Source: Octopus sinensis (taxonomy: Eukaryota). Taken from it: a DNA stretch of 64,000 nt. Location of the stretch: positions 42,470,001 to 42,534,000 of the forward strand of contig NC_043015.1 of assembly GCF_006345805.1 (NCBI RefSeq). Reading direction: 5' to 3'. The first letter of the stretch is position 1. Each line of letters begins with the position of its first letter. The notes below the pieces were generated by a model. It ran no database searches. It saw nothing but the letters and a program-made list of their open reading frames with translations, and was not told the DNA's origin. The position numbers were made by a program, and so were the translations under genes. Shown here in pieces: positions 34,738 through 61,687 of the stretch.

Positions 34738-34775
<38 letters not shown>

Positions 34776-38431: not shown

Positions 38432-38947
38432 GTAAGATGTAATACAGTTTCTCTATACTTTGAAAAGAACTGGTCAATTTGAATGGTAGACCTAATTGTC
38501 TTTCTGGTCTGCATAACCATCTAGCTTTTTGGTACATGGTATTGGGGGCATTTGTGTTAATTATTTGCTCGCAGGATAACTTTGTCTTCCATTCTTGAAG
38601 GCTTTGGGACTCATAGGTACTGCCTTTCTTTCTCAGGTAAAATATTCCTTACACAGTATTATTTTGTAGTCCATGTCTCTGTAGTCTTTGATTTGCTTGT
38701 TGCAGAGTTCCTACCATAATTTTTAAGAAATGTGGTGGTAAACTAGCTGTGGAAGGTAGGGACGCCATCCCTGAGACCTCTTTTGGAGCCTCCTACCTAA
38801 TTAAGAAAATTGAGATCAGATTGTTTTGTTGGTTCTTGACGATAGAGAAAAAAAATAAGCATTTAAATTTCAAATTGTAATTAATATTTCACATTTTGCA
38901 TATTTATTAGCTTTCCTCTTTTTTTTTTTATTTATTTACTTTTGCAG

Positions 38948-39027
38948 GTCAGAATAAAATGATCATTAACCACATTGAGAAACTATTTGTCACCAATGAT
39001 GCTGCTACAATTCTTAACGAGTTATCT
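38948..39027 (+). CDS. CCT8: CCT8 exon 3
   Basis: tttgcAG acceptor; (G)QNKMIINHIEKLFVTNDAATILNELS, with the chaperonin TNDAATIL motif; GTAAGT donor. Confidence 0.97.
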
Positions 39028-39997: not shown

Positions 39998-40360
39998 AAG
40001 TGGTTGTGTGGTAAGAAGCTTGCTTCCCAACCATTTCGTTTTGGGTTCAGTCCCACTGTGTGGCACCATGGCAAGTGTCTTCTACTATAGCTTTGGGCCA
40101 ATCAAGACCTTATGAGTGGATTTGGTGGATGGAAACTGAAAGAAGCCTGTCATGTGTGTGTGTGTGTTTGTCCTCCCATTATCGCTTGACAACTAATATT
40201 GGTGTGTTTATGTCCCTGTAACTTAGTGGTTAGGCAAAAGAGATTGATAGAATAAGTGTTAGTCTTAGAAAGAATAAGTACTGGGATCTATTTGACTGAA
40301 GGCAGTGCTCCAGCATGGCTGCAGATAAATGACTGAAACAAGTAAAAGAATAAAGAATAG
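39998..40360 (+). mobile_element. tRNA/CORE-type SINE in CCT8 intron 3
   Basis: Family head, core and tail present; an opposite-orientation copy lies at ~39140-39470. Confidence 0.75.
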
Positions 40361-40449
40361 CCCTGGTCTAGACTATGTCACCTTATGCAGTTAGCTGTAT
40401 TCAGTTTGAAATCTATCCAAGTTTTACAGTGATATTTTGTATCTTTCAG

Positions 40450-40581
40450 GTTCAACATCCAGCTGCCAAGATGCTGGTGATGGCTAGTCAGCAGCAAGAA
40501 CAAGAATGTGGTGATGGTACAAATGCTGTTCTGATTCTGGCTGGTTCCTTCCTAGAACACGCCGAAGAACTACTTCGCATG
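40450..40581 (+). CDS. CCT8: CCT8 exon 4
   Basis: VQHPAAKMLVMASQQQEQECGDGTNAVLILAGSFLEHAEELLRM, containing the GDGT ATP-binding motif; AG/GT boundaries. Confidence 0.98.
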
Positions 40582-42342: not shown

Positions 42343-42412
42343 GGTTTGTCTGTCCCTGAAGTAATTGAGGGCTACGAGATTGCTTACGCTAAAGCTACAG
42401 AATACTTACCAG
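42343..42412 (+). CDS. CCT8: CCT8 exon 5
   Basis: GLSVPEVIEGYEIAYAKATEYLP+G; AG/GT boundaries; frame continuous with neighbouring exons. Confidence 0.96.
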
Positions 42413-42663
42413 GTATGGTTTACTGTCTTCTTGCTTTTCCATGCTTTTACAAATTTTATCTGATGTAGTGACTTGTAGCAAAAGCTTCCCATATATTTTC
42501 ATTAAAAAAAAAAAAAGGAAAGAAAGAAATTATACATTTTTTTTTTTTACAAAACTGAGTTTTTTCATAAAATACATACTGAAGACTTGTCTGCGTTGCC
42601 GGTTGTAATTTCAATCTGTTATCTTTTAGTAAACCTTACACTTTTTTTTTTTTTCTTTTTTAG

Positions 42664-42792
42664 AACTTGTTGTTGGCCAAGTTAAAGATCTACGAAACAG
42701 GGAAGACGTCAGAAAAGTAATTCGTTCTGCTGTTATGAGCAAACAATACGGTTCCGAAGATTTCTTATCTGATCTAATTACTGATGCTTGTA
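42664..42792 (+). CDS. CCT8: CCT8 exon 6
   Basis: (E)LVVGQVKDLRNREDVRKVIRSAVMSKQYGSEDFLSDLITDAC+A; GTGAGT donor. Confidence 0.96.
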
Positions 42793-43694
42793 GTGAGTAT
42801 TTTTCACTTTTCTCTCCAAATTTCATTTTAGTCCAAGATGTTATAAACCTACCTATATGTTCTGTTTCCATCTTTTATAAGTTATCCTAATCTGTGTTAT
42901 TTTAACTCTTTAGCATTTCAGATTTCTCTTGTCAAATGTAATGCTTTTTCGTTCATGTTGCTTTTAATTAATCATGCATTATCTGATAGCTTCGAAATTT
43001 TGATATCATCATCATCATCATCGTTTTACGTCCGTTTTCCGTGCTAGCACAGGTTGGATGGTTCGACTGGGGTCTGGAAAGCCAGGAGGCTACACCAGGC
43101 ACCAGTCTGATCTGGCAGTGTTTCCACAGCTGGATGCCCTTCCTAATGCCAACCACTCCGTGGGTGTAGTGGGTGCCTTTTACGTGCCACCGGCATGGGC
43201 CGGAGGAGACTGGCTAACAGCTATGATTGGTTGGTGCCTTAACGTGTCACCGATACAGGCGCCAGTCAGATGGTGCTTTTAACGTTGTCACTGGCACAAG
43301 TATCTTAACTACAATTTCCATGGCATTGATAGGCTGGATACGGCTGGTTTAAATGCTAAAAGGTTAATTAAACACTTATGTAGCTAAACTCATTTAATGA
43401 TTGAAACGGTAAGCAGCAGAATTATTCTGACAGACAGTCTTCTGTAATTAGTAGGCCTCTTACTGTCTCAGCACAGTAGTACTAGCGATTGAGATTCTTT
43501 GAAAACCAATCCTTATCAGGATGGAACTCATTACTTCAGAAAGTTTGTAGACATTGAAGAACCAATACTGATCTAATCATTACTGAAACGTTTGTTTCCA
43601 AAGCCTTTCCAGATAATTGATTTTTCTTGGCCATGGTTGGTCACCTCACCTTAAATATTAAATGAAATGTAGGTACCTGCATCATAAGTATTCA

Positions 43695-44040
43695 ATTCGG
43701 TTCAATTCAATTTTTATTGGCTCAAAAAGCAAAAGCAAGGCCATGTAGGGGGACAGGGAGGGTGGTCATATAAAGAGTTCAGGCCATTTCTGGTCAAGAG
43801 AGACTTTGAACTGAGCGGTTGTCGGCATCTTCACTATCTCGTCTGGCAGCTTATTCCACAGATCCGCAACCCGGACAGAGAAAGCCCCTCTCCGATTGAG
43901 ATGAAATCGTCGTAGATAGAGCTTTTCGGAGTGACCCCGCAGCCCATGCTCTGGAGCAGGAGTGAAGAACAGCTCTTTCGAGAGGTTACACTTTCTGCTT
44001 ATGATGTTGTGAGTGAGAATCAGTTCACCACGGCGGCATC
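43695..44040 (-). mobile_element. CR1-type LINE 3' end
   Basis: Minus frame ...LRGHSEKLYLRRFHLNRRGAFSVRVADLWNKLPDEIVKMPTTAQFKVSLDQKW, the typical CR1 C-terminal signature; short (ATTGA)n-like tail. Confidence 0.8.
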
Positions 44041-44469
44041 GTTTTTTTTTTTAAATTAGTGCAGATCATAAGAAGTCCTTGACTGTATCCAGAAAGTTTT
44101 TGAATCTGTATCAAGAAAGATAACTATTGATAGATGAAATTAGCTTTGGTCATTTCACCATGGTACATGTTGTACCAGATGTACATGGTTGAGCTCAAAT
44201 CTACTTGACCAAATTTGACATTAAATTTGTTAATTTATGAATAAATACCATTCAAAGTATTCATTTTAATGTAGTGTATGACTGGCTTTTGTAAATAGTG
44301 TCACAAGTTCTATTTTGTTTTGCTTCTTGTAACAAAGTTGAAGGGTCTTTTTTTTATGTTATGCTAAGTATGATTTGGAAACTTTTCAATGTATCTTGTA
44401 AAATTAAATGTCAACTGAATTTGTGAGTTATGCATCACATGAGTAAATAATGTTTTACTTCAATTTCAG

Positions 44470-44531
44470 TTGGAATATTATCCATGAAAAATACTTTCAA
44501 TGTTGATAATGTCAGAGTATGCAAGATTCTG
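44470..44531 (+). CDS. CCT8: CCT8 exon 7
   Basis: (I)GILSMKNTFNVDNVRVCKIL, containing FNVDNVRVCKI; AG/GT boundaries. Confidence 0.96.
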
Positions 44532-44748
44532 GTAAGATTTTCTTCACTTTGTTTTCATTTCTATATTCATTCATTAGTGGCTTTACTGATTGCTTTGCAG
44601 CCTTCTATTCTGTTCATTGTATAATTTTAACTATTTTTGAATTAAAAGCACTGATATTTTTTTTTAAATAGCAATTTTAGTGTCAAAATCTTTCTGGTGT
44701 TTTTAGCAAATTTGTAGTTTCTATGTTTAAGTCTTTCTCTGTTTTTAG

Positions 44749-44886
44749 GGTTGTAGTATGATGAATTCCAGTGTGCTTCAAGGAATGGTTTTCAAGCGTG
44801 CAGTTGAAGGTGATATCACTAAAGCAGAGAAATGCAAAATAGCTATCTATTCCTGCCCATTAGATTCTTTGCAAACAGAAACTAAG
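44749..44886 (+). CDS. CCT8: CCT8 exon 8
   Basis: GCSMMNSSVLQGMVFKRAVEGDITKAEKCKIAIYSCPLDSLQTETK; AG/GT boundaries. Confidence 0.97.
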
Positions 44887-46112
44887 GTAAGAGTGACCCC
44901 TTTTTTTTAAAAATTTTTTATACACCTCTCACTAACAATACAATTGACAAGTGCTTTCTCCCTTTTTTTTTCTTTTTTAAAATCTAATTCTGTCTTTTGT
45001 GACAGTGTTAGCATGAACCGTTCTCAAAATATTTGGTTTAGGACTTTATATTTGAGAATTAGCATCCATGTATCCCAACATATCTACAGTCAAACAATCA
45101 AATGACTTAAACAAGTAAAAGATTGTAATATAATAGAGTGAATTGATTCTTTTAGGTTTTTTTTTTAGTTTTAGGTATTTTCATAATTCGAATTTCATTA
45201 AAGCAGTTCAAAGTTTTTACTTAACGTTTTTATAGATGTTTGTAGCAGAGAATTTGTGACAAGAACCACCAAAACCATGGAGTAGGCAGTCCACTGGTAA
45301 TTGGTGGAGTGAAAATACTTGTGGCCAAACATTTCTAAGTGTAAGGCAGGCAAACAATGAATCTTTTTCAGAAGTCTCCTGCTTATATGACAAATAGGTT
45401 CATTTCGATTCTAGTATAAACCTTTTTGCTCACCTTAACATGAAAGGCTGGTGGTTTTATAAAATGACTATTATTGCCTGCACTTTAGATTTTATTATTG
45501 ATGTGGACTTCTTTCTGCAATAATATTACATTGAAGAAGTTTTAAACGCTAATAAGCTCTCAACTGGACAATAATTTATTTCACAATAAACGCATGGTTT
45601 ATAATTATTTTATCATCATCGTTAACATCCGCTTTCCATGCTAGCATGGGTTGGACGGTTCGACCGGGGTCTGGGAAGCCAGGAGGCTGCACCGGGCCCA
45701 GTCTGATCTGGCAGTGTTTCTACGGCTGGATGCCCTTCCTAACACCAACCACCTTGTGAGTGTAGTGGGTGCTTTTTACGTGCCACCGGCACAAGCGCCA
45801 GGCGAGGCTGGCAACGGCCACGATCTGTTGGTGCTTTTTACGTGCCACCGGCACGGAGGCCAGTTGGGGCAGCGCCAATTTTCTACTTATCCATCTGACT
45901 ACATACCTACCCAGAAATCTCTATTTTTCCATTTGTTTATCTACTTACTCATCTCCTTCCACCTGTGTTTAGTCTCTTCTCTCCACCTACCTTTCTGTTT
46001 GTGTAAATCCTTACCTGTCTTTGTCACCTCATCTGTCAATACAATTGAGCAATAAAACCTAAACCAACGATTTCATAAGAAAGTTTTACTAATTCCATCC
46101 ATTTCTTAACAG

Positions 46113-46184
46113 GGAACTGTCCTGATAAAAACTGCCGAAGAATTGCTGAATTTCAGCAAAGGTGAAGAGGACCAAATGGAAAAG
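46113..46184 (+). CDS. CCT8: CCT8 exon 9
   Basis: GTVLIKTAEELLNFSKGEEDQMEK; GTGAGT donor. Confidence 0.97.
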
Positions 46185-46297
46185 GTGAGTTTGTATTTTC
46201 TTCTGGTAGATTATGGTGTTATTTTGCTTTTTGTTTGTTTCTTTCCCCCCTAATATTTTCCTGAGGTGTATCTAATTGCATATGTTTTTTATTTCAG

Positions 46298-46471
46298 CAC
46301 ATTCAAACCATTGCTGACTCTGGTGTTAATGTGATTGTTACCGGTGGTAAAGTTGGTGAGCTTAGTCTCCACTATTGCAACAAATATAACTTGCTAGTCG
46401 TTCGTCTTTTATCCAAATTTGACCTTAGAAGATTGGCTCGTTCCGTGTCAGCAACTGTCCTCCCCAAAATT
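46298..46471 (+). CDS. CCT8: CCT8 exon 10
   Basis: HIQTIADSGVNVIVTGGKVGELSLHYCNKYNLLVVRLLSKFDLRRLARSVSATVLPKI; GTAAGT donor. Confidence 0.97.
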
Positions 46472-47981
46472 GTAAGTAAACAGTCTTTTTTCTAACATTA
46501 ATCTCTTCATAATAATAATAATAATAATAATAATAATAGCTGATATGAATATTGGTTAGTTAGATTGATTCTCCGATCACACTTTCCACCATGCAGAGGG
46601 GGAGAGTAAGCGTTTGAGATGCAGGATAAGTGCACAATCTAAGGCTTGGTGGCAGGCACTGAGTAAAGGAATGCATGCCATATTGATATTACTCCTGTTA
46701 AAGTATTACTTAGAAAGTTAACTGTTATATGACCAATAAGGCTAAACTATGCAGCCTACCCTAGCACGTAAAAAGCACCATCCGTATGTAGCCAATGCCA
46801 GCACCGCCTTGACTGGCTTCCGAGTCGGTGGCATGTAAAGTCCACCAACCGATCGTGGCCGTTGCCAGCCTACCCTGGCACCTGTACCGGTGGCACGTAA
46901 AAAGCACCCACTACACTCACGGAGTGGTTGGCGTTAGGAAGGGCATCCAGCTGTAGAAACACTGCCAGATCAGATTGGAGCCTGGTGCAGCCCTTGGCTT
47001 CCCAGACCCCAGTTGAACCGTCCAACCCATACTTGCATGGAAAACGGACGTTAAACGATGATGCTGATGATATGCTTGTTTTAATCTTGATTACAAAGTA
47101 ATTGTGCTGCATGAAACTGAGTGATGATCAAAATGGCCTGATTTAAAGGTGTCTTTATATAATTCTTGATGCTTTCATCAACAAAAGAAAATAAATAACA
47201 AACTCACTACAAGGCAAGCACACAGCAGGAGAGATCTTCACAGGAAGAACTCCCATCCAACAAGTGTTTCTGCCCTTATACCTGATGCTCTGCAGGAGCC
47301 AGGCCCACCCAGGTCATGACTCTTACGTGTCCTGCTGCTGCTTTCCAAACTCCTGGCTCCAGCGGGATTTGAACCTGCATGGTTGTTTTTGTGAACTTGT
47401 GTTCCCAGGTCTGTGTTTTAACCCACTGGGCAACTCTGACTGACAAAGGAACCAGTTCTCTTCTTCCTTATATTCCTGTAAATAACTAATGGAATCCATA
47501 ATTAGGTCTATTGATCATTTCTAGACTAACTTAAAAATTGTAAAACATTTAGCTTCTGATACCAGTAATGTCATTGGTCAGAGCAGATGCTGTAGAAGTA
47601 AAACTGGTGCCTGTTCTTTTATTAGGTGCAGGCATGGCTATGTGGTTAAGAAATTCACTGTATAGTTTTAGGTTTGATCTTGCTGTGAGACACCTTGGGT
47701 AAGACTGACCAATGCTTTGTGAGTGAATTCGGTTAGTGGAAATAAGTCCTGGGGTCAGTTTAACTAAACCATTCGATCAGCTGCTCTGCATGGCTGTAGT
47801 CCACGGATTGAATCAAAGGATGAGTCTGGAATTCAGTTTTTTATTTTAGTTATGCCCACTTCAAAGAACATCTTTTTGTACTTAATCCACCTCAAAATTA
47901 AGGCATTTTATTAAAAAAGTGAAAAAAAAATTAATTACTTAACGGCACCTGGGATTATCGTTATGCTATTTTCTATTCTAG

Positions 47982-48069
47982 ACTGTTCCAACCACCGAAG
48001 AGATGGGATTTTGCGACCATGTTTATGTAGATGAAATTGGAGAAACTGCTGTTGTGATATTTAAACAAG
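47982..48069 (+). CDS. CCT8: CCT8 exon 11
   Basis: TVPTTEEMGFCDHVYVDEIGETAVVIFKQ+G; GTGAGT donor. Confidence 0.96.
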
Positions 48070-48177
48070 GTGAGTAGGACACCTGCGTTTTATTTCTTAA
48101 TTATTGATAATGATTGGTGCACTTATTAGCCTGATTGTTTATTTTTATTTATTTATTTATTTTTTCTCTGATTTCAG

Positions 48178-48293
48178 AGAAGGATGACACTGCAATCTCT
48201 ACAATTGTAGTCAGGGGTTCCTCTGACAATATTGTAGACGATATTGAAAGATGTATTGATGACGGTGTCAACACATTTAAAGCTATGACAAAG
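48178..48293 (+). CDS. CCT8: CCT8 exon 12
   Basis: (E)KDDTAISTIVVRGSSDNIVDDIERCIDDGVNTFKAMTK; AG/GT boundaries. Confidence 0.97.
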
Positions 48294-48411
48294 GTAAGGG
48301 CTGAAGCACTAGTTATTATATCCCGTCCTGTAGTGCCTTCTCTCTATTCATCTCCCAATCCTGTTGGAAACTAGAGATTTTGATAAGATGCTGTTAGCCA
48401 AGTACTATTAT

Positions 48412-48640
48412 TTAACCCTTTCGTTACCAACCTGGCCAAAACCGGCTCTGGCTCTGTAGTACAAATGTCTTGTTTTCATAAGTTTTGCATCAAAATATAC
48501 CACCAAACCTTAGTTGCAATTTATATTCCTAACACTAGCTTAATGATGACTAAGTTATTTTACTAAATTCTTTGTTATATTTAAAATAATTGAAAGAAAC
48601 ACAGAGCATCTCAAAATAAATACAGTAACGAAAGGGTTAA
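48412..48640. mobile_element. TTAA-flanked piggyBac-like MITE
   Basis: Perfect 16-bp termini ttaaccctttcgttac / gtaacgaaagggttaa. Confidence 0.8.
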
Positions 48641-49368
48641 AGAAAAAAAAAACAGGAATGTATGTATATAAACTATTACATGAACTTGGGCGAAATTTGC
48701 TGATAGCATTATGACTAATATACTCTGAAGATGTGGTTTTAACCTGTTATGTCACTTTCACTTTCTAAGTTGGTTGAATGCAGATAAGCTTTTTTTCTTT
48801 CTTTAGGGGTGTATTCATTTCTGAAGGTACATGTCTTAGTGGTTAGGGTGTTTGGCTCAAGTTCATGAGTTCAATTCCTGGTGGCACAGTGTGTCCTTGA
48901 ACAAGACACTCAGTTTCACATTGTCCCAGTCCACTCAGCTGGCAAAAATAATTAGTACCTGTAAATCGAATGGTTACCCATGTCACAATCTGTGTTACCC
49001 TGAATCTCTTTGAGAATACCTGAAGGGTCCACGTGTCTGGAGTGCCCAGCCACTTGCATGTCCATTTCACAAGCAGGCTCTTCTCTTCAGCGGATCAACT
49101 GCAACACTTGTTCTCATAACTGACAGAGAGCCACACTCTTCTATTAACTTTCGTATAAATCTGGAATCAGAAATATAGACTGTAGTAATACAGAAAAATA
49201 CTTTCTGTAAACCAAATATGATTAATTGTCTGTGAGGATGAAGACTAAAAATTATGGCACTGTTTTATACACGTCTGTGGTTGTGGTTGTTTAGTTTGTG
49301 TACCATTGTACATTGTTGTAAAATAGTATTTTTATTAATATTATGTGATATTGCATATTTCATTGCAG

Positions 49369-49440
49369 GATAGTAGATTGGTTGCTGGTGCCGGTGCAGT
49401 AGAAATTGAACTGGCTAAAAGAATTACTACTTTTGGTGAG
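49369..49440 (+). CDS. CCT8: CCT8 exon 13
   Basis: DSRLVAGAGAVEIELAKRITTFGE; GTAAGT donor opening the 8.05-kb intron 13. Confidence 0.97.
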
Positions 49441-49520
49441 GTAAGTCAAATCAATTGAATTGTACCGAAATTTAATTTATAGCTGTTTATATAAAATATA
49501 TATACATATATATATATATA

Positions 49521-49915
49521 GGCGCAGGAATGGCTGTGTGGTAAGTAGCTTGTTTACCAACCACATGGTTCCGGGTTTAGTCCCACTGCGTGGCACCTTG
49601 GGCAAGTGTCTTCTACTATAGCCTCGGGCCGACCAAAGCCTTGTCAGTGGATTTGGTAGACGGAAACTGAAGGAAGCTCTGGTGTATTTACGTCCCTGTA
49701 ATTTGTGTATATATTTGTGTGTCTGTGTTTGTCCCCTAGCGTTGCTTGACAACCGACGCTGGTGTGTTTACGTCTCCGTCACTTAGTGGTTCGGCAAAAG
49801 AGACCGATAGAATAAGTACTGGGCTTACAAAAGAATAAGTCCCGGGGTCGAGTTGCTCGATTAAAGGCGGTGCTCCAGCATGGCCGCAGTCAAATGACTG
49901 AAACAAGTAGAAGAA
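49521..49915 (+). mobile_element. tRNA/CORE-type SINE immediately upstream of the intron-13 array
   Basis: Family head ggcgcaggaatggctgtgtgg through tail gaaacaagtagaaga. Confidence 0.85.
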
Positions 49916-50005
49916 TATACAATTAGATTAAATACTATGAAAATCATTTTAATTTCTTTCCTTTCTCTTTCTACTTGTTGACGTCGTCTGTTGCTAACGT
50001 TAAAT

Positions 50006-50058
50006 ATGATGATGTGGAATTCCCCCTCTGACTTCTATGGAGACCTTCCAATTTCTGA
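50006..50058 (+). ncRNA. Candidate box C/D snoRNA copy 1
   Basis: Box C ATGATGA; guide TGTGGAATTCCCCCT; D' CTGA; C'-like ATGGAGA; guide CCTTCCAATTT; box D CTGA. External stem CTGTTGC (49988-49994) / GCAACAG (50065-50071). Confidence 0.72.
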
Positions 50059-50662
50059 TTGCTTGCAACAGTATATGGGATGCGTGTGTGTGTGTATTAA
50101 GAAATAAATCTTTTGTCATCTAAAAACAAATGTGACGAATTAGCAGTCTACTTGGGGAGGACTACCCAGTTGTAAAGCAATGCCTAAAATCTATTCATCT
50201 AACCCATGCCAGCTTGGAGAAATGGATGTAAGTGAATATATGATTTTAGATATATATATAGATGTGTGTGTATCATGAATTTTTTTTATTGTGCTTTTTT
50301 TTTTTACCTTAAATGCTGATATTAACCTTTTTTCGTTATTATATTTCTTACCATAGTACACCCCTCATGAGTTTCAATTAAATTCTAAAGTAATCATGAA
50401 TTTAGACTTTCATTAAACAACTGTAACTTTTATACTTATCAATATATTAATGTGATATTTGGCACGCAATTATAGAAAGGGTTCTTAATCAATTCTATAG
50501 CTTAACTTAAAGAGGACTTAAAAGAGAACGTGAAACAATCTACTTAACACTCTCTTCACTTACATTTAATTTTACTAATTAGAATTAAATGCTATGAAAA
50601 TAATTTTGATTTCTCTCCTTTCTCTTTCTACTCGTTGACGTCATCTGTTGCTAACGTTAAAT

Positions 50663-50715
50663 ATGATGATGTGGAATTCCCCCTCTGACTTCTATGGAGA
50701 CCTTCCAGTTTCTGA
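50663..50715 (+). ncRNA. Candidate box C/D snoRNA copy 2 (D-guide variant CCTTCCAGTTT)
   Basis: Same box layout and external stem as copy 1. Confidence 0.68.
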
Positions 50716-51801
50716 TTGCTTGCAACAGTGTATGGGATGCATGTGTGTGTGTGTGTAATAAGAAATAAGTCTTTTGTCATCTAAAAACATATGTGACATG
50801 TGAGCAGTATGAGGGCTACCCATCTGTAAAACGATGCCTAAAATATATTCCTCTAACCCATGCTAGCTCGGAGAAATGGACGTAAGTGAATATATGATTT
50901 TAGATATATATGGATGTGTGTGTAATCATGAATTGTCTTTTTTATTGTGCTTTTTTGTTTACCTTAAGTACTGATATTTAAAATCTGAATACAAGTGAAA
51001 TTTAGTGTGTGGAAACCTTAATCCTTTGGCGTTCAGATAACTCTATCAAAAGATATATCTTTCTTATTTGCATTGTTTTGAATTAACCATCCATTGTCTC
51101 ATAGCTTCAAGTTTTCAATGCTGTGATAGTTTGTTTTTAGAATCACATTCAGGGTGGGCGTGAAAGGCTGGGTCTGCTCGGTGTCAATGTAAAACAGCAT
51201 ATTTTGGCAAGATATGGTGGATTTAAATGCTAACATGTTGATATCTCTATGGGTAAATTCTTCTGATAATGCATTTGTATTACTATCCTGGACATTACAT
51301 CATCATCGTTTAACGTCCGTTCTCCATGCTAGCATAGGTTGGATAGTTCGACCGGGGATCTGGGAAGCCAGAGGGCTGCCCCAGGCTCCGGTCTTATCTG
51401 GCAATGTTTCTATAGCTGGATGCCCTTCCTAACGCCAACCACTCCGTGAGTGTAGTTAGAATTAAAGTATCAAGCTGTGAGGAAAATGTTTGTTATCGAA
51501 ACATTTCTAAGATTCCTGTTTGAAATGAAGAATAGTTGTCTTCATGGTTAAGGCAAGGCAAGCTGATTGTTATTAACAATCACTGTGATATTAGATACTT
51601 AGGGAATTGCCATAACTCCAAGATGAATTTATTGAACAGAAGACTACATTATTAAAAGAGAATGTGAAATAAGCTACTTAACACTCTCTTCAGTTACATA
51701 TAATTTTACTAATTACAATTAAGTTAAATGCTATGAAAATAATTTAAATATGTCTCCTTTCTCTTTCTACTCGTTGACGTCATCTGTTGCTAACGTTAAA
51801 T

Positions 51802-51854
51802 ATGATGATGTGGAATTCCCCCTCTGACTTCTATGGAGACCTTCCACTTTCTGA
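51802..51854 (+). ncRNA. Candidate box C/D snoRNA copy 3 (D-guide variant CCTTCCACTTT)
   Basis: Same box layout and external stem as copy 1. Confidence 0.68.
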
Positions 51855-52397
51855 TTACTTGCAACAGTGTATGGGATATGCGTGTGTGTGTACTAAGAAA
51901 TGTTTTTGTCATCTAAAAAGAAATGTAACATATGAGCAGTCTACATGGGGAGGACTACCCAGTTCAAAAACAATGCCTAAAATCTATTCATCTAACCCAT
52001 GCTAGCTTGGAGAAATGGATGTAAGTGAATATATGATTTTAGATACATATAGATATGTGTGTATCATGAATTGTCTTTTTTTTTTTTTTTTTATGCTGAT
52101 ATTTAACCCTTTCGTTACTATATTTCTTACCATAATACACCCCTCATGAGTTTCAGTTAAATTCTAAAGTTTCATTAAACAACTGTAACTTTTTTTTACT
52201 TATTGGCACACAATTATAGAAAGGGTTCTTAATCAATTCTATAGCTTAACTTAAAGAGAATGTGAAATAAGCTACTTAGCACTCTCTTCAGTTTACATTT
52301 AATTTTAATAATTACAATTAAATTAAATGCTATGAAAATAATTTTAATTTCTCTCCTTTCTCTTTCTACTCGACGTCGTCTGTTGCTAACGTTAAAT

Positions 52398-52450
52398 ATG
52401 ATGATGTGGAATTCCCCCTCTGACTTCTATGGAGACCTTCCAATTTCTGG
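52398..52450 (+). ncRNA. Candidate box C/D snoRNA copy 4, box D mutated (CTGG); probable pseudo-copy
   Basis: Core identical to copy 1 except terminal CTGA>CTGG. Confidence 0.45.
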
Positions 52451-53066
52451 TTGCTTGCAACAGTGTATGGGATATGCGTGTGTGTGTACTAAGAAATAAA
52501 TCCTTTGTGATCTAAAAACAAATGTGACGAATTAGCAGTCTACTTGGGGAGGACTGCCCAGTTGTAAAATAATGCCTAAAATATATTCATCTAACCCATG
52601 CTAGCTTGGAGAAATGGATGTAAGTGAATATATGATTTTAGATATATGTGGATGTGTGTGTAATCATGAATTGTCTTTTTTTATTGTGCTTTTTTTTTTT
52701 TTTTTTACCTTAAATGCTGATATTAACCCTTTTTCGTTATTATATTTCTTACCAAAATACACCCCTCATGAGTTTCAATTAAATTCTAAAGTGATCATGA
52801 ATTTAGACTTTCATTAAACAACTAACTTTTATACTTATCACCATATTAATGTGATATTTGGCACGCAATTATAGAAAGGGTTCTTAATCAATTCTATAGC
52901 TTAATTTAAAGAGGACTTAAAAGAGAATGTGAAATAATCTACTTAACACTCTTTTCTCTTACATTTAATTTTACTAATTAGAATTAAATTAAATGCTGTG
53001 AAAATAATTTTAATTTCTCTCCTTTCTCTTTCTACTCGTTGACGTCATCTGTTGCTAACGTTAAAT

Positions 53067-53119
53067 ATGATGATGTGGAATTCCCCCTCTGACTTCTATG
53101 GAGACCTTCCAATTTCTGA
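53067..53119 (+). ncRNA. Candidate box C/D snoRNA copy 5
   Basis: Core identical to copy 1. Confidence 0.7.
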
Positions 53120-53592
53120 TTGCTTGCAACAGTGTATGCGATGCATGCATGTGTGTGTGTGTGTGTGTGTACTAAGAAATAAGTCTTTTGTCATCTAAAA
53201 ACAAATGTGACAAATGAGCAGTCTACTTGGGGAGGATGCCCAGTTGTAAAATAATGCCTAAAATATATTCATCTAACCCAAGCTAGCTTGGATAAATGGA
53301 TGTAAGTGAATATATGATTTTAGATACATATGGATGTGTGTGTGTCATGAATTGTCTTTTTTTATTGTGCTTTTTTGTTTACCTTAAATACTGATATTTA
53401 AAATCTGAATACAAGTGAAATTTAGTGTGTGGAAACCTTAATTAAAAGAGAATGTGAAATAAGCTACTTAACACTCTCTTCAGTTTACATTTAATTTTAA
53501 TTATTACAATTAGATTAAATGCTATGAAAATAATTTTGATTTCTCTCCTTTCTCTTTCTACTCGTTGACGTCATCTGTTGCTAACGTTAAAT

Positions 53593-53645
53593 ATGATGAT
53601 GTGGAATTCCCCCTCTGACTTCTATGGAGACCTTCCAATTTCTGA
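53593..53645 (+). ncRNA. Candidate box C/D snoRNA copy 6
   Basis: Core identical to copy 1. Confidence 0.7.
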
Positions 53646-54236
53646 TTGCTTGCAACAGTGTATGGGATACATGCATGTGTGTGTGTGTGTGTACTGAGAA
53701 ATAAGTCTTTTGTCATCTAAAAACATATGTGACATATGAGCAGTATGAGGGCTACACATCTGTAAAACAATGCCTAAAATATATTCACCTAACCCATGCT
53801 AGCTTGGAGAAATGGATGTAAGTGAATATATGATTTTAGATACATATAGATATGTGTGTATCATGAATTTTTTTTTTTTTTTAAATGCTGATATCAACCC
53901 TTTTCGTTATTATATTTCTTACCAAAATACACCCCTCATGAGTTTCAATTAAATTCTAAAGTGATCATGAATTTAGACTTTCATTAAACAACTAACTTTT
54001 ATACTTATCACCATATTAATGTGATATTTGGCACGCAATTATAGAAAGGGTTCTTAATCAATTCTATAGCTTAATTTAAAGAGGACTTAAAAGAGAATGT
54101 GAAATAATCTACTTAACACTCTTTTCTCTTACATTTAATTTTACTAATTAGAATTAAATTAAATGCTGTGAAAATAATTTTAATTTCTCTCCTTTCTCTT
54201 TCTACTCGTTGACGTCATCTGTTGCTAACGTTAAAT

Positions 54237-54289
54237 ATGATGATGTGGAATTCCCCCTCTGACTTCTATGGAGACCTTCCAATTTCTGA
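54237..54289 (+). ncRNA. Candidate box C/D snoRNA copy 7
   Basis: Core identical to copy 1. Confidence 0.7.
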
Positions 54290-54765
54290 TTGCTTGCAAC
54301 AGTGTATGCGATGCATGCATGTGTGTGTGTGTGTGTGTACTAAGAAATAAGTCTTTTGTCATCTAAAAACAAATGTGACAAATGAGCAGTCTACTTGGGG
54401 AGGATGCCCAGTTGTAAAATAATGCCTAAAATATATTCATCTAACCCAAGCTAGCTTGGATAAATGGATGTAAGTGAATATATGATTTTAGATACATATG
54501 GATGTGTGTGTGTCATGAATTGTCTTTTTTTATTGTGCTTTTTTTTTTTTTTTACCTTAAATACTGATATTTAAAATCTGAATACAAGTGAAATTTAGTG
54601 TGTGGAAACCTTAATTAAAAGAGAATGTGAAATAAGCTACTTAACACTCTCTTCAGTTTACATTTAATTTTAATTATTACAATTAGATTAAATGCTATGA
54701 AAATAATTTTGATTTCTCTCCTTTCTCTTTCTACTCGTTGACGTCATCTGTTGCTAACGTTAAAT

Positions 54766-54818
54766 ATGATGATGTGGAATTCCCCCTCTGACTTCTATGG
54801 AGACCTTCCAATTTCTGA
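54766..54818 (+). ncRNA. Candidate box C/D snoRNA copy 8
   Basis: Core identical to copy 1. Confidence 0.7.
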
Positions 54819-55294
54819 TTGCTTGCAACAGTGTATGGGATACATGCATGTGTGTGTGGTGTGTGTGTGTGTACTAAGAAATAAGTCTTTTGTCATCTAA
54901 AAACAAATGTGACAAATGAGCAGTCTACTTGGGGAGGATGCCCAGTTGTAAAATAATGCCTAAAATATATTCATCTAACCCAAGCTAGCTTGGATAAATG
55001 GATGTAAGTGAATATATGATTTTAGATACATATGGATGTGTGTGTGTCATGAATTGTCTTTTTTTATTGTGCTTTTTTGTTTACCTTAAATACTGATATT
55101 TAAAATCTGAATACAAGTGAAATTTAGTGTGTGGAAACCTTAATTAAAAGAGAATGTGAAATAAGCTACTTAACACTCTCTTCAGTTTACATTTAATTTT
55201 AATTATTACAATTAGATTAAATGCTATGAAAATAATTTTGATTTCTCTCCTTTCTCTTTCTACTCGTTGACGTCATCTGTTGCTAACGTTAAAT

Positions 55295-55347
55295 ATGATG
55301 ATGTGGAATTCCCCCTCTGACTTCTATGGAGACCTTCCAATTTCTGA
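55295..55347 (+). ncRNA. Candidate box C/D snoRNA copy 9
   Basis: Core identical to copy 1. Confidence 0.7.
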
Positions 55348-55927
55348 TTGCTTGCAACAGTGTATGGGATACATGCATGTGTGTGTGTGTGTGTGTGTGT
55401 ACTGAGAAATAAGTCTTTTGTCATCTAAAAACATATGTGACATATGAGCAGTATGAGGGCTACACATCTGTAAAACAATGCCTAAAATATATTCACCTAA
55501 CCCATGCTAGCTTGGAGAAATGGATGTAAGTGAATATATGATTTTAGATACATATAGATATGTGTGTATCATGAATTTTTTTTTTTTTTTAAATGCTGAT
55601 ATCAACCCTTTTCGTTATTATATTTCTTACCAAAATACACCCCTCGTGAGTTTCAATTAAGTTCTAAAGGAATCATGAATTTAGACTAGTTTCATTAAAC
55701 AACTGTAACTTTTATACTTATCAACATATTAATGTGATAGTTGCCACACAATTATAGAAAGGGTTCTTAATCAATTCTATAGCTTAACGTGAAATAAGCT
55801 ACTTAACACTCTCTTCAGTTTACATTTAATTTTACTAATTACAATTAGATTAAATGCTATGAAAATAATTTTAATTTCTCTCCGTTCACTTTCTACTCGT
55901 TGACGTCATCTGTTGCTAACGTTAAAT

Positions 55928-55980
55928 ATGATGATGTGGAATTCCCCCTCTGACTTCTATGGAGACCTTCCAATTTCTGA
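55928..55980 (+). ncRNA. Candidate box C/D snoRNA copy 10
   Basis: Core identical to copy 1; 3' stem arm GCAATAG still pairs through a G-U wobble. Confidence 0.7.
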
Positions 55981-56302
55981 TTGCGTGCAATAGTGTATGG
56001 GATACATAAATCAATGCCTAAAATATATTCATCTAACCCATGCTAGCTTCGAGAAATGGATGTAAGTGAATAAATGATATATATAGATGTGTGTGTATCA
56101 TGGATTTTTTTTTTTACTTTAAAAACTGATATTTAAAATTGTAAAATAAGTGAAATTTATTGTTCCAAAGCGTTAATCCTTTGGCATTCAGATAATTCTA
56201 TCAAAAGAAATGCTTATTTATTTGCATTGTTTTGAATTAACCATTCGTTGTCTCATAGCTTCAAGATTACAATTAGATTAAATGCTGTTGCTAACGTTAA
56301 AT

Positions 56303-56355
56303 ATGATGATGTGGAATTCCCCCTCTGACTTCTATGGAGACCTTCCAATTTCTGA
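56303..56355 (+). ncRNA. Candidate box C/D snoRNA copy 11
   Basis: Core identical to copy 1; 3' stem arm GCAACGG pairs through a U-G wobble; the upstream pyrimidine tract is deleted. Confidence 0.7.
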
Positions 56356-57493
56356 TTGCTTGCAACGGTATATGGGATGCGTGTATGTGTACTAAGAAAT
56401 AAGTCTTTTGTCATCTAAAAACAAATGTGACATATGAGCAGTCTACTTGGGGAGGACTGCCCATCTGTAAAACAATGCCTAAAATATATTCACCTAACCC
56501 ATGCTAGCTTGTAGAAATGGATGTAAGTGAATATATGATTTTAGATATATATGGATGTGTGTGTATCATGAATTATCTTTTGTTATTGTCCTTTTTTTTG
56601 TTTGTTTTTTTTACTTTAAATACTGATATTAGTACAAGTGGAAACTTGAAGAGAATCTATCATGTGTGGGTTTGTTTACATCTGCCTCTTAGTCAAAAGT
56701 CATGACATTCATGCAATGTTCTGTTAGTATTTCACCTACAAATAGATAACATACTTGTTTCGTAGTTTTGAAGCTTGTGGAATTATGGACCCTTTACTGG
56801 AAAACTGGTAATGGTTAGCATCAGGAAGGGCATCCAGTTGTAAAGCAATGCCGAAAATAGCATATTCATGTAAGTAATGCTGGCATAGAAAAATGAATGT
56901 TAGATATAATGGGTTGTCTTTTATTTATTGTGATTTTTTTTTATTTCCCTTGGATACTTTGCTACTAACATTTAAGATGTTAGGTGAAGCTTACTTTTTC
57001 CAAAGCAAAAACCTACAACTATGATTCCCTGCTAACATTATTGGTAAAAGTCCTTTGATAGTAATGCAATTATTTATGGACTTGGATGTGCTGTGATTCC
57101 TTGGGCTCGTAAGGCCCGAGCTTAACCCTTTAGTGTTTAAACTGGCCAAATCCGGTCCAATATATTCTACATGTTTTATATTCAAACTGGCAATATCTAG
57201 CTTCTCACACCTAACCTACAATGCCATTCTAAAAATAAACAATCACATCATTGAAACCTCAAAGCTGTAAGATAATCCAGGATTAATCCAAAACAATTTG
57301 AGTGAAAAAGTATTACAGTTAACAGAGTAATCTGAACACTAAAGGGTTAATCCACTTTCCACAGTGTATACGTGACTGGGTTTACAACCCTTTTCTTTCT
57401 CTTTTAGATTATAACTATTGGACAATAGCATTTTTGCATGAGTATTAACTGCTCATTGCAGTTGGTTTTCAACTTTGTGTTTATTTGTTGCAG

Positions 57494-57586
57494 AGTATTC
57501 CTGGCTTAGAACAATATGCTATTAAAAAGTATGCCCAGTCATTAGAGGTTCTTCCTCAGTCTTTGGCTGAAAATACCGGTGCAAAG
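57494..57586 (+). CDS. CCT8: CCT8 exon 14
   Basis: SIPGLEQYAIKKYAQSLEVLPQSLAENTGAK; AG/GT boundaries. Confidence 0.97.
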
Positions 57587-57735
57587 GTAAGCGGGAATTT
57601 CATAATCTTTTTTTTTTACACCTTTACTTTTCTTCCCAGTTTACCAAATAACTTATTTGCTCTAAATTCCTGTTTTATATTTGTGAGGCTTCAGAGGTAG
57701 AAGAAAATAACATCTATTTTGTCTGTTTTATGTAG

Positions 57736-57807
57736 AGCCGAGAAGTTCTTTCCAAGTTGTATGCCTCTCATCAAGAAGGTAAACAGAATGTTGGTGTGAA
57801 TATTGAG
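57736..57807 (+). CDS. CCT8: CCT8 exon 15
   Basis: SREVLSKLYASHQEGKQNVGVNIE; AG/GT boundaries. Confidence 0.96.
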
Positions 57808-59087
57808 GTGAGGACTTGTTTGTTTGTCTTTATTTTCTCTTCACTCACCCATCCTAATAGGAGTAAACAGTAATCTCCATATTTCTGTGTTAATCCATTA
57901 GCATTTAAACAAGCCAGTTCTGGTCTCATAACTATCCTACAAACAAATACATCATCAAAATCTCAAAGATATGAGATAATTGCATGATTGATTCAAAACA
58001 ATGTGAATAAGTACTGCTTTTGACAGTGTAGTCTCGAATGCTAAAGGGTTGATAATGAAAATAAGGGAGATGGGTATTGCTGTTGAACACTTTGATAAGT
58101 AAAGTTATAACAGCCCCAAAAAGCAGCTTGTATGTGGCATCATGATTTCCAGAAATTGAACCCTCTTGGATGGTTAGTCTGGAAATGATATGCTATTCTG
58201 ATTTGGTTTATTACCGAATCTCCTTCAAGTCCCTTCATAATGACTTAAAAAGAAGAGAAAGAAAGCTTTCAATAATGTATGTAAAGAAATAAAAAGCAGG
58301 AAAAAAGCAATAGGGTGTTTGTACAAGGAACATTTAAATCGAAATTGATCTGGAAAATAAACAAATGATTTTTGTTTGGAGTTGCTCAATTAAGAAAATG
58401 GTTACTAGTGAGAACATCTGTGTTGATATTGTTATTTGTTTCTTCAAGTTGAGGCCACCAGTTCTTTGGCATTTAAACCAGCCATATCTGGCCAAAGGCG
58501 CATGGCTCAGTGGTTAAAGCATTGAGCTCACAATCGCGAGGTGGAGAGTATGATTCTCAGACTAGGCTGTGTTGTGGTCTTGAGCAAAGCAATTTATTTC
58601 ACAATTTATTGCTCCGGCTCACTCAGCTGTAGAAATGAGTTGCGACGTCACAGGTGCCAAACTGTATCGGCTTTTGCCTTTCCCTTGGATAACATCAGTG
58701 GCCTGGAAAGGAGCAGCTGGTATCCATGGGCAACTGCTGGTCTTCCATAAACAACCTTGCCTGGACTTGTGCCTTGGGTAACTTTCTCGGTGCAATCCTA
58801 TGGTCATTCATGACTAGGGAGGAGGGGCGTCTTTATCCCTTTTATCCAGCCAAAACATTCTACCTATTTTGCGTCCGAATTTGCCAAATCTGGCCTGTCA
58901 CACCTGCTCAACAATATAATTCTGAAAATTAAATTACCTCACCAAAATTTCAAAATAATAATGCATGATTAATTCAAAACAATGTCGATAAGTAAGCATT
59001 GCCTTTTGACAGAATAATGTGATTGCTAAAGGTGAACATTTTAATTTTTAAAACTTCAGTATAAATAATTATTCCTCAAATTGTGGG

Positions 59088-59633
59088 TTAACCCTTTCGT
59101 TACCAACCCGGCCAAAACTGGCTCTGGTTCTGAGTTCAAATGTCTTGTTTTCATAAGTTTTGAATTAAAATCTTCCACCAAACCTTAGTCACAATTTATT
59201 CTTTGTAACACTAGCTGAATGATAACTAAGTTATTTTACTAAATACTTTGTTAGATTTAAAATTAAGAACATCTCAAAATAAATACAGTAATCATCATCA
59301 TCATTTAGTGTCCGTTTTCCATGCTAGCATGGGTTGGACGGTTTAACTGGGGTCTGTGAAGCCGGAAGGCTTCATCGGGCCCAGTCAGATTTGGCAGTGT
59401 TTCTACGGCTGGATGCCCTTCCTAACACCAACCACTCCGTGAGTGTAGTGGGTGCTTTTTATGTGCCACCTGCACCGGTGCCAGACAGAGCTGGCAAACG
59501 TCCACGAACGGATGGTGTTTTTACGTGCCACCGGCACGGGGGCCAGGCGAGGCTGGCAGCAGACACAAACGGATGGTGCTTTTACGTGCTACCGGCACGG
59601 GGCCAGGCGAGGCTGGCAACGGGAAAGGGTTAA
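59088..59633. mobile_element. Second copy of the 48412 MITE with a nested (GAT)n-tailed SINE
   Basis: MITE sequence runs to aaatacagtaa (59290); the SINE follows; gaaagggttaa closes at 59633. Confidence 0.7.
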
Positions 59634-59684
59634 TATGTTGTTGTCTTTCAGCTGTTTATTTAAAATTTTTATTTTATTTTTTAG

Positions 59685-59801
59685 GATGTTGGTGGTGTTA
59701 TGGATTCAGTAGAGAAAAATATTTTAGATCTTTATACAAAATTTTTCTGGATATTGAAGTTTGCCACTACAGCTGCTTGCACAGTGCTCAATGTTGACCA
59801 G
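59685..59801 (+). CDS. CCT8: CCT8 exon 16
   Basis: DVGGVMDSVEKNILDLYTKFFWILKFATTAACTVLNVDQ; AG/GT boundaries. Confidence 0.95.
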
Positions 59802-60120
59802 GTAGGGATATATGTCTCTTGTTCTGTTGCTTCTCCTCGCTAGTATCTTCTTGCTCTTTTTATACTTTCTGTAATATGTGTAGATGTCATTAGTTAGAGA
59901 TGAGTTATGGCTATAGATGCATTGCATGGCTGTGTGGTAAGAAGCTTGCTTTCCACCCATATAGTTCCGGGTTCAGTCTCACTGTGTGGCACCTTGGGCA
60001 GGTGTCTTTTACTATGGCCTCAGGCAGACCAAAGCCTTGTGAGTGGATTTGGTTGATGGAAGCTAAAAGAAGTTGTGTGTGTGTGTATATACACACACAC
60101 TATATATATATTATATATAT

Positions 60121-60213
<93 letters not shown>

Positions 60214-61192
60214 CCACAGGAGTGGCTGTGTAGTAAGTAGCTTGCTTCCCAACCATGTGGTTCCAGGTTCAGTCTCACTGCTTAGCACCTTTGGCAAGTG
60301 TCTTCTACTATATAGTCTTGGGCTAACCAAAGCCTTTTGAATGGATTTGGTAGTCAGAAACTGAAAGAAGCTCTGGTGTATTTGCGTCCTTGTAACTTAG
60401 CGGTTCAGCAAAGAGATTGTTACAATAAATACTAGGCTTACAAAGAATGAGTGCTGGGGTTGATTTGCACAACTGCAAGTAGTGCTCCAGCATGGTTGCA
60501 GTCAAATGACAAACAAAAGAATAAAAATATATATGTATATATTTATGTCTGTTCCTTCACCATCACTTGAGAAATGATGTTGGTGTGTTTACATCCCTGT
60601 AACCTAGCTTACAAAGTTGACTAAAAACCTTCAAGGTGGTGCTCCAGTATGGCTGCAGTCAAATGACTGAAATAAATTAAATAATAAAAGAATATGTAAG
60701 TTTAAGTGCAGGCGTTGTTTCTCAACCATGTGTTCTTGGGTTTAGTCCCCTGCACTGCATCTTGAGCAAGTGTAATCTATTATAGCCCCGGGTTAACCAA
60801 AGCCTTGTGAGGGATTTTTTGACAGAGGCTTGTGTGTGTGTCAAAATGTGATGGTTGTAAATGAACATCATCCTCGTGCAAGTGAGATTGTTCGTTTCCG
60901 GTCTTCCATGGAAAACATTCTCTGGCCATGGGGGAAAATGGAAGTCTAATTTCTATTCTAACATCACAACCTGGGCCTTGGATGTCTTTCAGCCAAAGTG
61001 GTTCCTACAAACTGTCCAAGGCCGTTGCTGTTGATTCTTTGTTAGGCATTTAACTGGGTTCTGCAAGTATTACAAACCTCATCTCTGGTTTGAGAATATT
61101 GGCTTTGATTAAGCTTTTGGAAATAATGATACAATTCTTCAGAGTTATTGAGTATCAACATCTTGTTCAGATATGTTCAGTTTTTATAATAT

Positions 61193-61593
61193 ACTAGCAG
61201 CATAGCCCGGTGTTGCCCGGGTATGTAAGAGCTCCCTAGTAGGCAACGACTAATCCCAATCTAGTTCTTTCCCTCTAGGGAATGAAGGCGCATGTGTAGG
61301 TTGCAACGTCTTCTCTTCACTCGAATACTTCTGTGTTTACGATGTTCCTAGCTGTCTCCCGACAGAAAATGTGTTGCATATAAAAAGCTTAGATTCTCGA
61401 CCCCATGTCGAATTTATCGATTTTTTTCAGAACTGGGGGAGCTTTTCAAAGTTTTCGCTACGTTAGTTTTGAATTATGACATTGGGTTATGTGTGTGCCA
61501 AGTTTCATCAGAATCGGTTGAAAGCCGTATTCAGGGTGAGGGTACAACCTGACAGCCACACAGACACACAAACTGCCGTTTATATATAGAGAG
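61193..61593 (+). mobile_element. Non-autonomous Helitron-like element in CCT8 intron 16
   Basis: Starts actagcagcatagcccggtgttgcccggg; ends acagacacacaaactgccgtttatatatagagagat. Confidence 0.6.
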
Positions 61594-61621
61594 ATTTATC
61601 ATTTCCTCTTTTCTTTTGCAG

Positions 61622-61687
61622 ATCATTATGGCCAAACCTGCAGGTGGTCCCAAGACCCGAGAGACCAAAGACTGGGATGAAGATTAA
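61622..61687 (+). CDS. CCT8: CCT8 exon 17 (terminal coding exon)
   Basis: IIMAKPAGGPKTRETKDWDED* matches the CCT8 C-terminus (IIMAKPAGGPK...KDWD). Exon lengths sum to 1632 nt = 543 aa + stop. Confidence 0.97.
   Translation: MIMAKPAGGPKTRETKDWDED

Follow-up and report, generated by a model that had tools for sequence, protein, structure and literature searches.

The window analysed here is a 64,000-nucleotide (nt) stretch of the Octopus sinensis genome (NC_043015.1, positions 42,470,001 to 42,534,000 of the forward strand; coordinates below are those of the window). It carries the gene CCT8 (TCP-1 theta) on the + strand, and intron 13 of CCT8 holds a tandem array of eleven compact cassettes with the layout of a small nucleolar RNA (snoRNA) of the box C/D class. 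We mapped CCT8 by using concatenated + strand open reading frame (ORF) pieces as a protein query, mapping them with tblastn and reading the splice sites. The query matched CCT8 proteins of many animals with E values down to 1e-130; the best matches were those of gastropods and bivalves, at 62 to 64% identity, and none exceeded 64%. The coding region (33528..61687) comprises 17 exons with AG/GT at all junctions and gives an uninterrupted ORF of 543 amino acids. Intron 13 (49441..57493, GT...AG, 8053 nt), between coding exons 13 (49369..49440, DSRLVAGAGAVEIELAKRITTFGE) and 14 (57494..57586, SIPGLEQYAIKKYAQSLEVLPQSLAENTGAK), is the longest of the gene and would measure approximately 1.3 kb if the array were removed. 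The cassettes are on the CCT8 sense strand. The last one ends 1125 nt before the 3' splice site, so that every copy is more than 1.1 kb away from it. An earlier reading of the letters alone, called below the original prediction, had placed the array on the sense strand of the largest CCT8 intron, and the 17-exon map bears this out. Its description of many genes in one intron holds insofar as coding exons 13 and 14 enclose the whole set of copies, but the map rests on protein homology, and non-coding exons are possible within the repeats.

The array (49919..56660, + strand) packs 11 copies into 6.7 kb. The 26-nt string running from box C to box D' (ATGATGATGTGGAATTCCCCCTCTGA) occurs 11 times in the 64-kb window, always on the + strand and with no mismatch, which confirms all of the predicted box C starts, at 50006, 50663, 51802, 52398, 53067, 53593, 54237, 54766, 55295, 55928 and 56303. 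Dinucleotide shuffles of the window contained no match to this string, and none is expected by chance. Successive box C starts are 375 to 1139 nt apart, and the eleven units are separated by two types of spacer plus one spacer bearing a short interspersed element (SINE). The Tandem Repeats Finder program, run with a maximum period of 500, returned no rows for the array, because the unit spacing exceeds that 500-nt limit. The SINE-like dispersed repeat lies in the spacer after copy 2 (51298-51456) and recurs elsewhere in the window at least 15 times, at 75 to 90% identity; this insert and a further 450 nt or so of unrelated spacer account for the 1139-nt length of the copy 2 unit.

From box C to box D the cassette measures 53 nt and reads, in order, AUGAUGA (box C), UGUGGAAUUCCCCCU (15 nt), CUGA (box D'), CUUCU, AUGGAGA (a C'-like box), CCUUCCAAUUU (11 nt) and CUGA (box D). 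It is enclosed by CUGUUGC(N11)...(N6)GCAACAG, whose arms form an external stem of 7 base pairs (bp). The original prediction gave one and the same text for all copies. That text of 53 nt is exact in 8 of the 11, with box C AUGAUGA in 11/11 and box D CUGA in 10/11; boxes C, D' and C' and the D' guide are free of changes in all copies, the D' box being a perfect CUGA throughout. The departures are in copies 2 and 3, where the D guide varies at one shared position (A to G and A to C, giving CCAGTTT and CCACTTT, or CCAGUUU and CCACUUU as RNA), and in copy 4, where box D is CTGG.

Measured from stem to stem, all on the + strand, copies 1 (49988..50071, with box C at 50006 and the end of box D at 50058), 5 (53049..53132), 6 (53575..53658), 7 (54219..54302), 8 (54748..54831) and 9 (55277..55360) are intact, and the unit of copy 5 is 99.8% identical to that of copy 7. 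Copies 2 (50645..50728) and 3 (51784..51867) have intact boxes and the D guide variants just mentioned. Copy 4 (52380..52463) also carries a 3-nt deletion in its leader, and the change of its box D to CUGG probably makes it a dead copy. The boxes of copies 10 (55910..55993) and 11 (56285..56368) are intact. Copy 10 has GCAAUAG as its 3' stem half (a G.U pair) and has lost approximately 115 nt of downstream spacer, and copy 11 has GCAACGG (a U.G pair) and is without the pyrimidine/TGACGTCA leader. Thus, the CTGTTGC/GCAACAG stem that had been predicted around every copy is exact in 9 of the 11, and the two substituted copies keep seven pairs by means of G.U.

We scanned both strands of the window for the full architecture, i.e., RUGAUGA, a CUGA 10 to 21 nt later, a terminal CUGA 45 to 125 nt from box C, and, no farther than 12 nt from the boxes, an inverted repeat of 6 bp or more on either side. 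The scan returned copies of the array and nothing else, shuffled windows giving 0.01 candidates. The scan missed copy 4 on account of its box D, and copy 11 only because the scan extended the stem of that copy by an extra G.U pair. The basic unit had no further copy in the 57 kb of SINE-rich sequence flanking the array.

For the divergence analysis, whole units were aligned and reduced to eight non-redundant copies. Variable columns amounted to 2 of 53 between boxes C and D, 0 of 18 in the 5' stem half and loop, and 6 of 84 from stem to stem, compared with 122 of 362 in the spacers; the 3' loop and stem half had 4 of 13. Parsimony assigned 3 events to the 53 nt from box C to box D, none to the 18 nt of the 5' stem half and loop and 7 to the 84 nt from stem to stem, whereas the spacers accumulated 60 events in 242 well-aligned columns, or 0.25 per site. 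From the 5' stem half through box D, 3 events in 71 nt correspond to a rate approximately six times slower than that of the spacers. Fisher tests against the spacers gave p = 7e-7 for the stretch between the boxes and p = 2e-7 from stem to stem, and the corresponding Poisson probabilities at the flank rate were 9e-4 and 4e-4. Copy pairs with 10 to 20% spacer difference showed 0 to 2 differences in the 84-nt cassette. The trough of low variation extends from the TGACGTCA leader to box D, and the deletions of copies 10 and 11 end just outside the external stem. A core that, across species, is no more conserved than the spacers had been named in advance as an outcome that would speak against the prediction; among the array copies, the core proved conserved well beyond the spacers. 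This pattern is more indicative of a constrained RNA-coding part than of a neutral repeat, and we read it as purifying selection acting on several copies.

Other units have hardly diverged over their whole length (0.2% between the units of copies 5 and 7, 2.8% between those of copies 6 and 9), and some of them are very young, so that the array is still turning over. A higher-order structure is discernible at 52937-55797, with copy 5 near-identical to copy 7, copy 6 close to copy 9, and copy 8 a hybrid of both types. This arrangement indicates a recent block duplication of several units and unequal exchange.

All cells of the external stem (100%) are paired. Copies 10 and 11 carry its only substitutions, two transitions that are kept as G.U pairs, and the stem is present in the minimum free energy (MFE) fold of the 84-mer. 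A canonical terminal stem of 4 to 5 bp beside the boxes is absent, only two A-U pairs being possible there; the terminal helix of the box C/D class is thus provided by the external 7-bp stem and not by an adjacent one. Box C/D snoRNAs that are without a terminal stem or far from the 3' splice site reportedly depend on external stems in the intron (Darzacq & Kiss 2000; Hirose & Steitz 2001; Hirose, Shu & Steitz 2003). Thermodynamic stability was rejected as a line of evidence (z of -1.2 and -0.9).

Two further pairing possibilities were observed. The conserved leader ACGUCAUC, part of the palindrome TGACGTCA that resembles a cyclic AMP response element (CRE), is complementary to box C GAUGAUGU over 8 bp. 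When a 201-nt context is folded, the resulting helix (53039-53076, and at the same offset in copies 1-10) forms in the MFE as well as in the centroid structure. Of its cells, 91% are paired, and it is a competitor of the external stem. In addition, the D' guide (53074-53088) holds an 8-nt palindrome, GGAAUUCC, by which two cassette RNAs, or two cassettes of one transcript, could pair via their guides.

The cassette was compared with known families. An Rfam cmscan, one of the checks suggested with the original prediction, gave no match at gathering thresholds across the whole 64-kb window. In a relaxed scan of one unit, the matches overlapping the cassette were all to weak C/D models, the best being snoR60 (16 bits versus a gathering score of 40, E 0.86), together with sR55 (14.3 bits versus 35) and snoPyro_CD (13.1 bits versus 45). 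The models recognise the layout of the C/D class, without family membership, and homology to the plant snoR60 was rejected at 16 bits and an E of 0.86. Literature searches returned no paper with the cassette guide-plus-box strings and nothing relevant on snoRNAs in octopus or other cephalopods or on CCT8 as a snoRNA host gene. Exact scans with the cassette DNA gave no matches in prokaryotic genome contigs or in viral contigs, and six-frame peptides across the cassette, used as a protein query, gave no candidates. The RNA class is known; as a family, the cassette is new both to the searchable literature and to Rfam, in agreement with the original prediction, which knew of no description of it.

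We delimited the orthologous CCT8 intron in three molluscs by the flanking peptides ...ELAK..T.FGE and.PGLEQYA.... It measures 325 nt in Batillaria (locus L001), 418 nt in Tegillarca (L002) and 1388 nt in Candidula (L003), and none of the three contains a cassette: these introns, from one gastropod, one bivalve and one land snail, have no box C and no guide match, with up to 2 substitutions, in a cassette-like context. No cassette and, at gathering thresholds, no Rfam snoRNA were found in the three whole CCT8 genes either, and a motif scan of them gave a single weak candidate, which lies in Candidula, consists of an overlapping pair and is apparently unrelated to the cassette. From those results we conclude that CCT8 was not an ancestral molluscan snoRNA host and that the cassette is a later acquisition. 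The single-copy ancestor that was to be looked for in the orthologous mollusc intron therefore did not turn up in these three species.

We think it probable, at roughly 60%, that the array is a lineage-specific, tandemly amplified, intron-hosted box C/D snoRNA gene family. A lineage-specific amplified intronic snoRNA cluster is also what had been predicted, and the layout, the host gene, the stem, the core conservation and the absence from three molluscs agree with it, but neither guide matched conserved rRNA better than shuffled guides did (see below). In this model, the family would have amplified by unequal crossing-over and block duplication within CCT8 intron 13, and RNA polymerase II, by transcribing CCT8, would produce cassettes in every host transcript. 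The CUGUUGC/GCAACAG stem would juxtapose box C and box D across an 11-nt/6-nt internal loop, so that the C/D kink-turn could form and recruit SNU13/15.5K, NOP56, NOP58 and fibrillarin regardless of the distance to the 3' splice site. Splicing and debranching, or endonucleolytic cuts in the spacers, would be followed by exonuclease trimming down to the small nucleolar ribonucleoprotein (snoRNP), yielding an RNA of approximately 60 to 85 nt. The guides UGUGGAAUUCCCCCU (D') and CCUUCCAAUUU (D) would then direct 2'-O-methylation to whichever nucleotide pairs with the fifth position upstream of D' or D, and the ten intact copies per host transcript would ensure a high dose. We infer this processing, the snoRNP assembly and the methylation by the cassette RNAs from the sequence. 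For C/D snoRNAs that occur singly in introns and have no terminal stem, such a route, with transcription driven by the host, snoRNP assembly aided by an external stem whatever the distance to the 3' splice site, and trimming by exonucleases, is reportedly established (Darzacq & Kiss 2000; Hirose, Shu & Steitz 2003).

Several observations weigh against this reading, and the first of them concerns the guides. We searched for targets of both guides in a set of 120 eukaryotic ribosomal DNA contigs from metagenomes, fetched via the conserved 3' end of 18S, allowing G.U pairs, anchoring on the fifth position and using shuffled-guide nulls and two scoring schemes. Targets of the guides would form the duplexes AGGGGGAAUUCCACA and AAAUUGGAAGG. 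The best conserved ribosomal RNA (rRNA) site was 18S AAUUGGAGGG for the D guide (10 bp with 1 G.U) and GGGGGGAGU for the D' guide (9 bp with 2 G.U). Shuffled guides equalled or beat these in 17% (D) and 81% (D') of cases, and with the mismatch-tolerant score they were as good in 25% (D) and 70% (D'). In the predicted double-guide layout, the guides measure 15 and 11 nt, the C' box is a degenerate one, and no convincing target in conserved rRNA emerged for either guide. With AUGGAGA, box C' departs from UGAUGA at two positions and keeps the terminal GA; degenerate C' boxes are common in eukaryotes. The fold energy of the 84-mer is ordinary (z of -1.2), which is normal for C/D snoRNAs, and no compensatory covariation was found in the external stem among the copies. 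The 3' loop and stem half accumulated 4 events in 13 nt, which is the spacer rate. Gene conversion may contribute to the low divergence of the core, but alone it does not explain a trough that matches the RNA. To these points must be added the empty Rfam result at gathering thresholds and a consideration on processing: an intron with several snoRNAs is expected to yield long RNAs with snoRNA ends if its spacers stay uncut, and with 11 cassettes in one intron, the release of single snoRNAs would need cuts in the spacers (PMC11028025).

Within the window, including the CCT8 exons, we found no complementarity to the guides within 2 to 3 mismatches. Positions 1-9 of the D guide form nine contiguous Watson-Crick pairs with the U6 small nuclear RNA (snRNA) at AAAUUGGAA (human nt 28-36; U6 sequence from PMC10045129). 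The family-wise p value of this pairing, estimated over the combined rRNA and snRNA search space, is approximately 0.06. It would put a modification at the second U, and the U6 equivalent of human U32 is one of the predicted sites; we regard the pairing as a lead and not as a finding. We know of no such U6 modification in mammals. As far as tested, the family is best called orphan within the conserved rRNA searched, the expansion segments, snRNAs and tRNAs of the organism itself lying outside that search. Its targets would be outside the conserved rRNA core, the family behaving as an orphan or being directed at lineage-specific sequence.

Some of those points are also what a neutral or decaying amplification would produce, an explanation that we deem possible though unlikely. 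A segment of 0.5 to 0.65 kb of the intron would have been duplicated with a snoRNA-like passenger, most or all of the copies would be pseudogenes or remain unprocessed, and recent duplication and conversion, not selection, would explain why the core has diverged so little. Whole units are indeed near-identical in the case of copies 5 and 7 (0.2%) and copies 6 and 9 (2.8%), part of the array being very young; the box D of copy 4 is dead, deletions have occurred in or beside the units of copies 10 and 11, the target scans found no target and compensatory covariation is lacking. However, recency does not account for the older pairs, which are 10 to 20% apart in their spacers and only 0 to 2 nt apart in the 84-nt cassette. 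Conversion tracts would not repeatedly fall, without selection, on a trough so sharply limited to the region from the leader to box D, and the deletions of copies 10 and 11 end exactly outside the external stem, which also argues against decay.

A more far-reaching version of the snoRNA family is quite unlikely in our estimate. It would be a non-mammalian tandem orphan C/D family, independently evolved in one intron of a protein-coding housekeeping gene, with non-canonical targets (U6 near the ACAGAGA box, or messenger RNAs) or with snoRNA-capped long RNAs as products, and convergent with SNORD115/116.

It seems very unlikely to us that the product consists, wholly or partly, of long RNAs that run across the spacers between two snoRNA ends, similar to the snoRNA-ended long non-coding RNAs (sno-lncRNAs) or the SPA RNAs of the Prader-Willi region. 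Such RNAs would be protected by snoRNPs at both ends and bind proteins via (UG)n and UGCAUG. The location of all cassettes within one mapped intron would suit this model, two snoRNAs per intron being known to yield sno-lncRNAs after exonucleolytic trimming (PMC11028025). Of the 11 units, 10 also have a (TG)n tract that starts approximately 20 nt after the stem (it was lost in the deletion of copy 10), with TGCATG there in six, but the density of TGCATG in the array is only about twice that outside it (1.19 versus 0.56 per kb). Moreover, the spacers evolve fast, at 0.25 events per site, and the length of (TG)n varies like that of an ordinary microsatellite. Enrichment of UGCAUG was rejected as evidence for a sno-lncRNA sponge, the excess being only two-fold. 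In the unit of copy 5, the (TG)n microsatellite is found at 53133-53175, with equivalents in other units and with TGCATG, an RBFOX-type motif, at its 5' edge.

Splice site-like sequences were also observed between the cassettes. All 11 spacers contain GAT/GTAAGT, a consensus 5' splice site, and in 10 of the 11 units an AGCAG is present approximately 85 nt upstream of GTAAGT and approximately 100 nt downstream of box D. One possibility is that each unit holds a small non-coding exon (53221-53311 and equivalents). Each snoRNA would then be alone in its intron, with a 3' splice site approximately 100 nt downstream of it, an arrangement shared with the mammalian arrays.

Highly improbable, finally, is a role at the DNA level, as an array of transcription factor sites (the CRE palindrome TGACGTCA and the palindrome GGAATTCC) or as a local satellite or transposable element fragment with an incidental likeness to C/D RNAs: TGACGTCA is indeed confined, within the window, to 8 of the units, the leader around it is conserved, and GGAATTCCCC presumably resembles a kappaB-type site, but the conserved block is continuous over at least 71 nt rather than made of two short sites, all C/D elements are in canonical order and spacing on the host sense strand with the inverted repeat paired in all copies, copy 11 lost the CRE leader and kept the cassette precisely, and the SINE-rich flanks of 57 kb have no other copy of the unit.

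As an intron-hosted snoRNA gene family, the array can be compared with several known systems. The mammalian arrays, i.e., SNORD115/116 of the Prader-Willi region, SNORD113/114 of Dlk1-Dio3 and the rat Bsr/RBII-36, also consist of near-identical C/D genes arranged head-to-tail, with local duplication and gain or loss of copies, guides without a canonical rRNA target, and sub-variants among the copies (PMC11028025). One feature of the SNORD115/116 type, many tandem copies of one C/D snoRNA, is found in the CCT8 array as well. In the mammalian arrays, however, the non-coding host is a repeated series of exons and introns in which each snoRNA occupies a separate intron, and those arrays are imprinted and eutherian-specific and have tens to hundreds of copies. 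The 11 copies of the CCT8 array share a single mapped intron, the host being a protein-coding housekeeping gene in the mollusc lineage, and the RNA would be much shorter, with 53 nt from C to D.

Clusters of intronic snoRNAs are also known from Drosophila and plants (Huang et al. 2004 and 2005, as cited in PMC5932544). The usual animal rule is one snoRNA per intron (PMC5932544, PMC11028025). Like the CCT8 array, the Drosophila and plant clusters have more than one snoRNA per intron, and paralogous isoforms arose in them by local duplication (PMC5932544; PMC11028025). Unlike it, the Drosophila clusters first described are mainly H/ACA and have few copies, and the plant clusters are mostly heterogeneous; a homogeneous C/D array of 11 copies with 0.5-kb spacers is not described in those papers.

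C/D snoRNAs with an external stem, such as the vertebrate U24, share with the cassette the lack of an adjacent terminal stem, the flanking inverted repeat and the location far from the 3' splice site, but they are single-copy and have known rRNA targets. In the CCT8 cassette, the 5' stem half and the 11-nt loop are as conserved as the snoRNA itself, and the 3' half is not. The description of the cassette as archaeal sRNA-like stands as far as its compact layout is concerned. Very compact at 53 nt between the ends of boxes C and D, and with two guides and only 5 nt linking D' to C', it resembles archaeal C/D sRNAs such as snoPyro_CD and sR55, to which it gives weak end-to-end cmscan alignments. 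Archaeal C/D sRNAs have symmetric guides of approximately 12 nt, whereas those of the cassette measure 15 and 11 nt, its C' is degenerate and it is found in a spliceosomal intron. Membership was therefore rejected on the basis of the scores (13 to 14 bits versus gathering scores of 35 to 45), the asymmetric guides and the degenerate C'.

A 2024 review gives two imprinted eutherian loci and one rat-specific locus as the only documented cases of a single C/D snoRNA repeated in large tandem arrays, and adds that understudied genomes might hold more of them (PMC11028025). Outside mammals, it is unusual for a homogeneous tandem array to lie within a single intron of a protein-coding housekeeping gene (PMC11028025; PMC5932544). 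If the snoRNA family is real, tandem snoRNA amplification would be independent of imprinting and of non-coding hosts. The intron would constitute a natural test of the number of snoRNAs that can be released from a single intron, involving external stems, endonucleolytic cuts and sno-lncRNA by-products, and one more orphan guide family would be available for target searches by RiboMeth-seq or chimeric reads. A cephalopod parallel with the brain-expressed mammalian arrays would draw attention, but this link is pure speculation at present.

Upstream of CCT8, a match to a macoilin first exon was found on the - strand (32681-32779), with 76% identity over 33 amino acids to the Tegillarca locus. It is head-to-head with CCT8, approximately 750 nt upstream of the start codon, and the same divergent pair is present in the gastropod and bivalve loci, which supports the orthology of the genes and their molluscan context. 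The orthologous CCT8 intron of Candidula contains a tandem repeat of its own, unrelated to the cassette, with a period of approximately 40 to 55 nt (GGTATGGTTGGTGCATTGATTTGTCCAGGTCCTTGAA..., L003 ~23650-24400).

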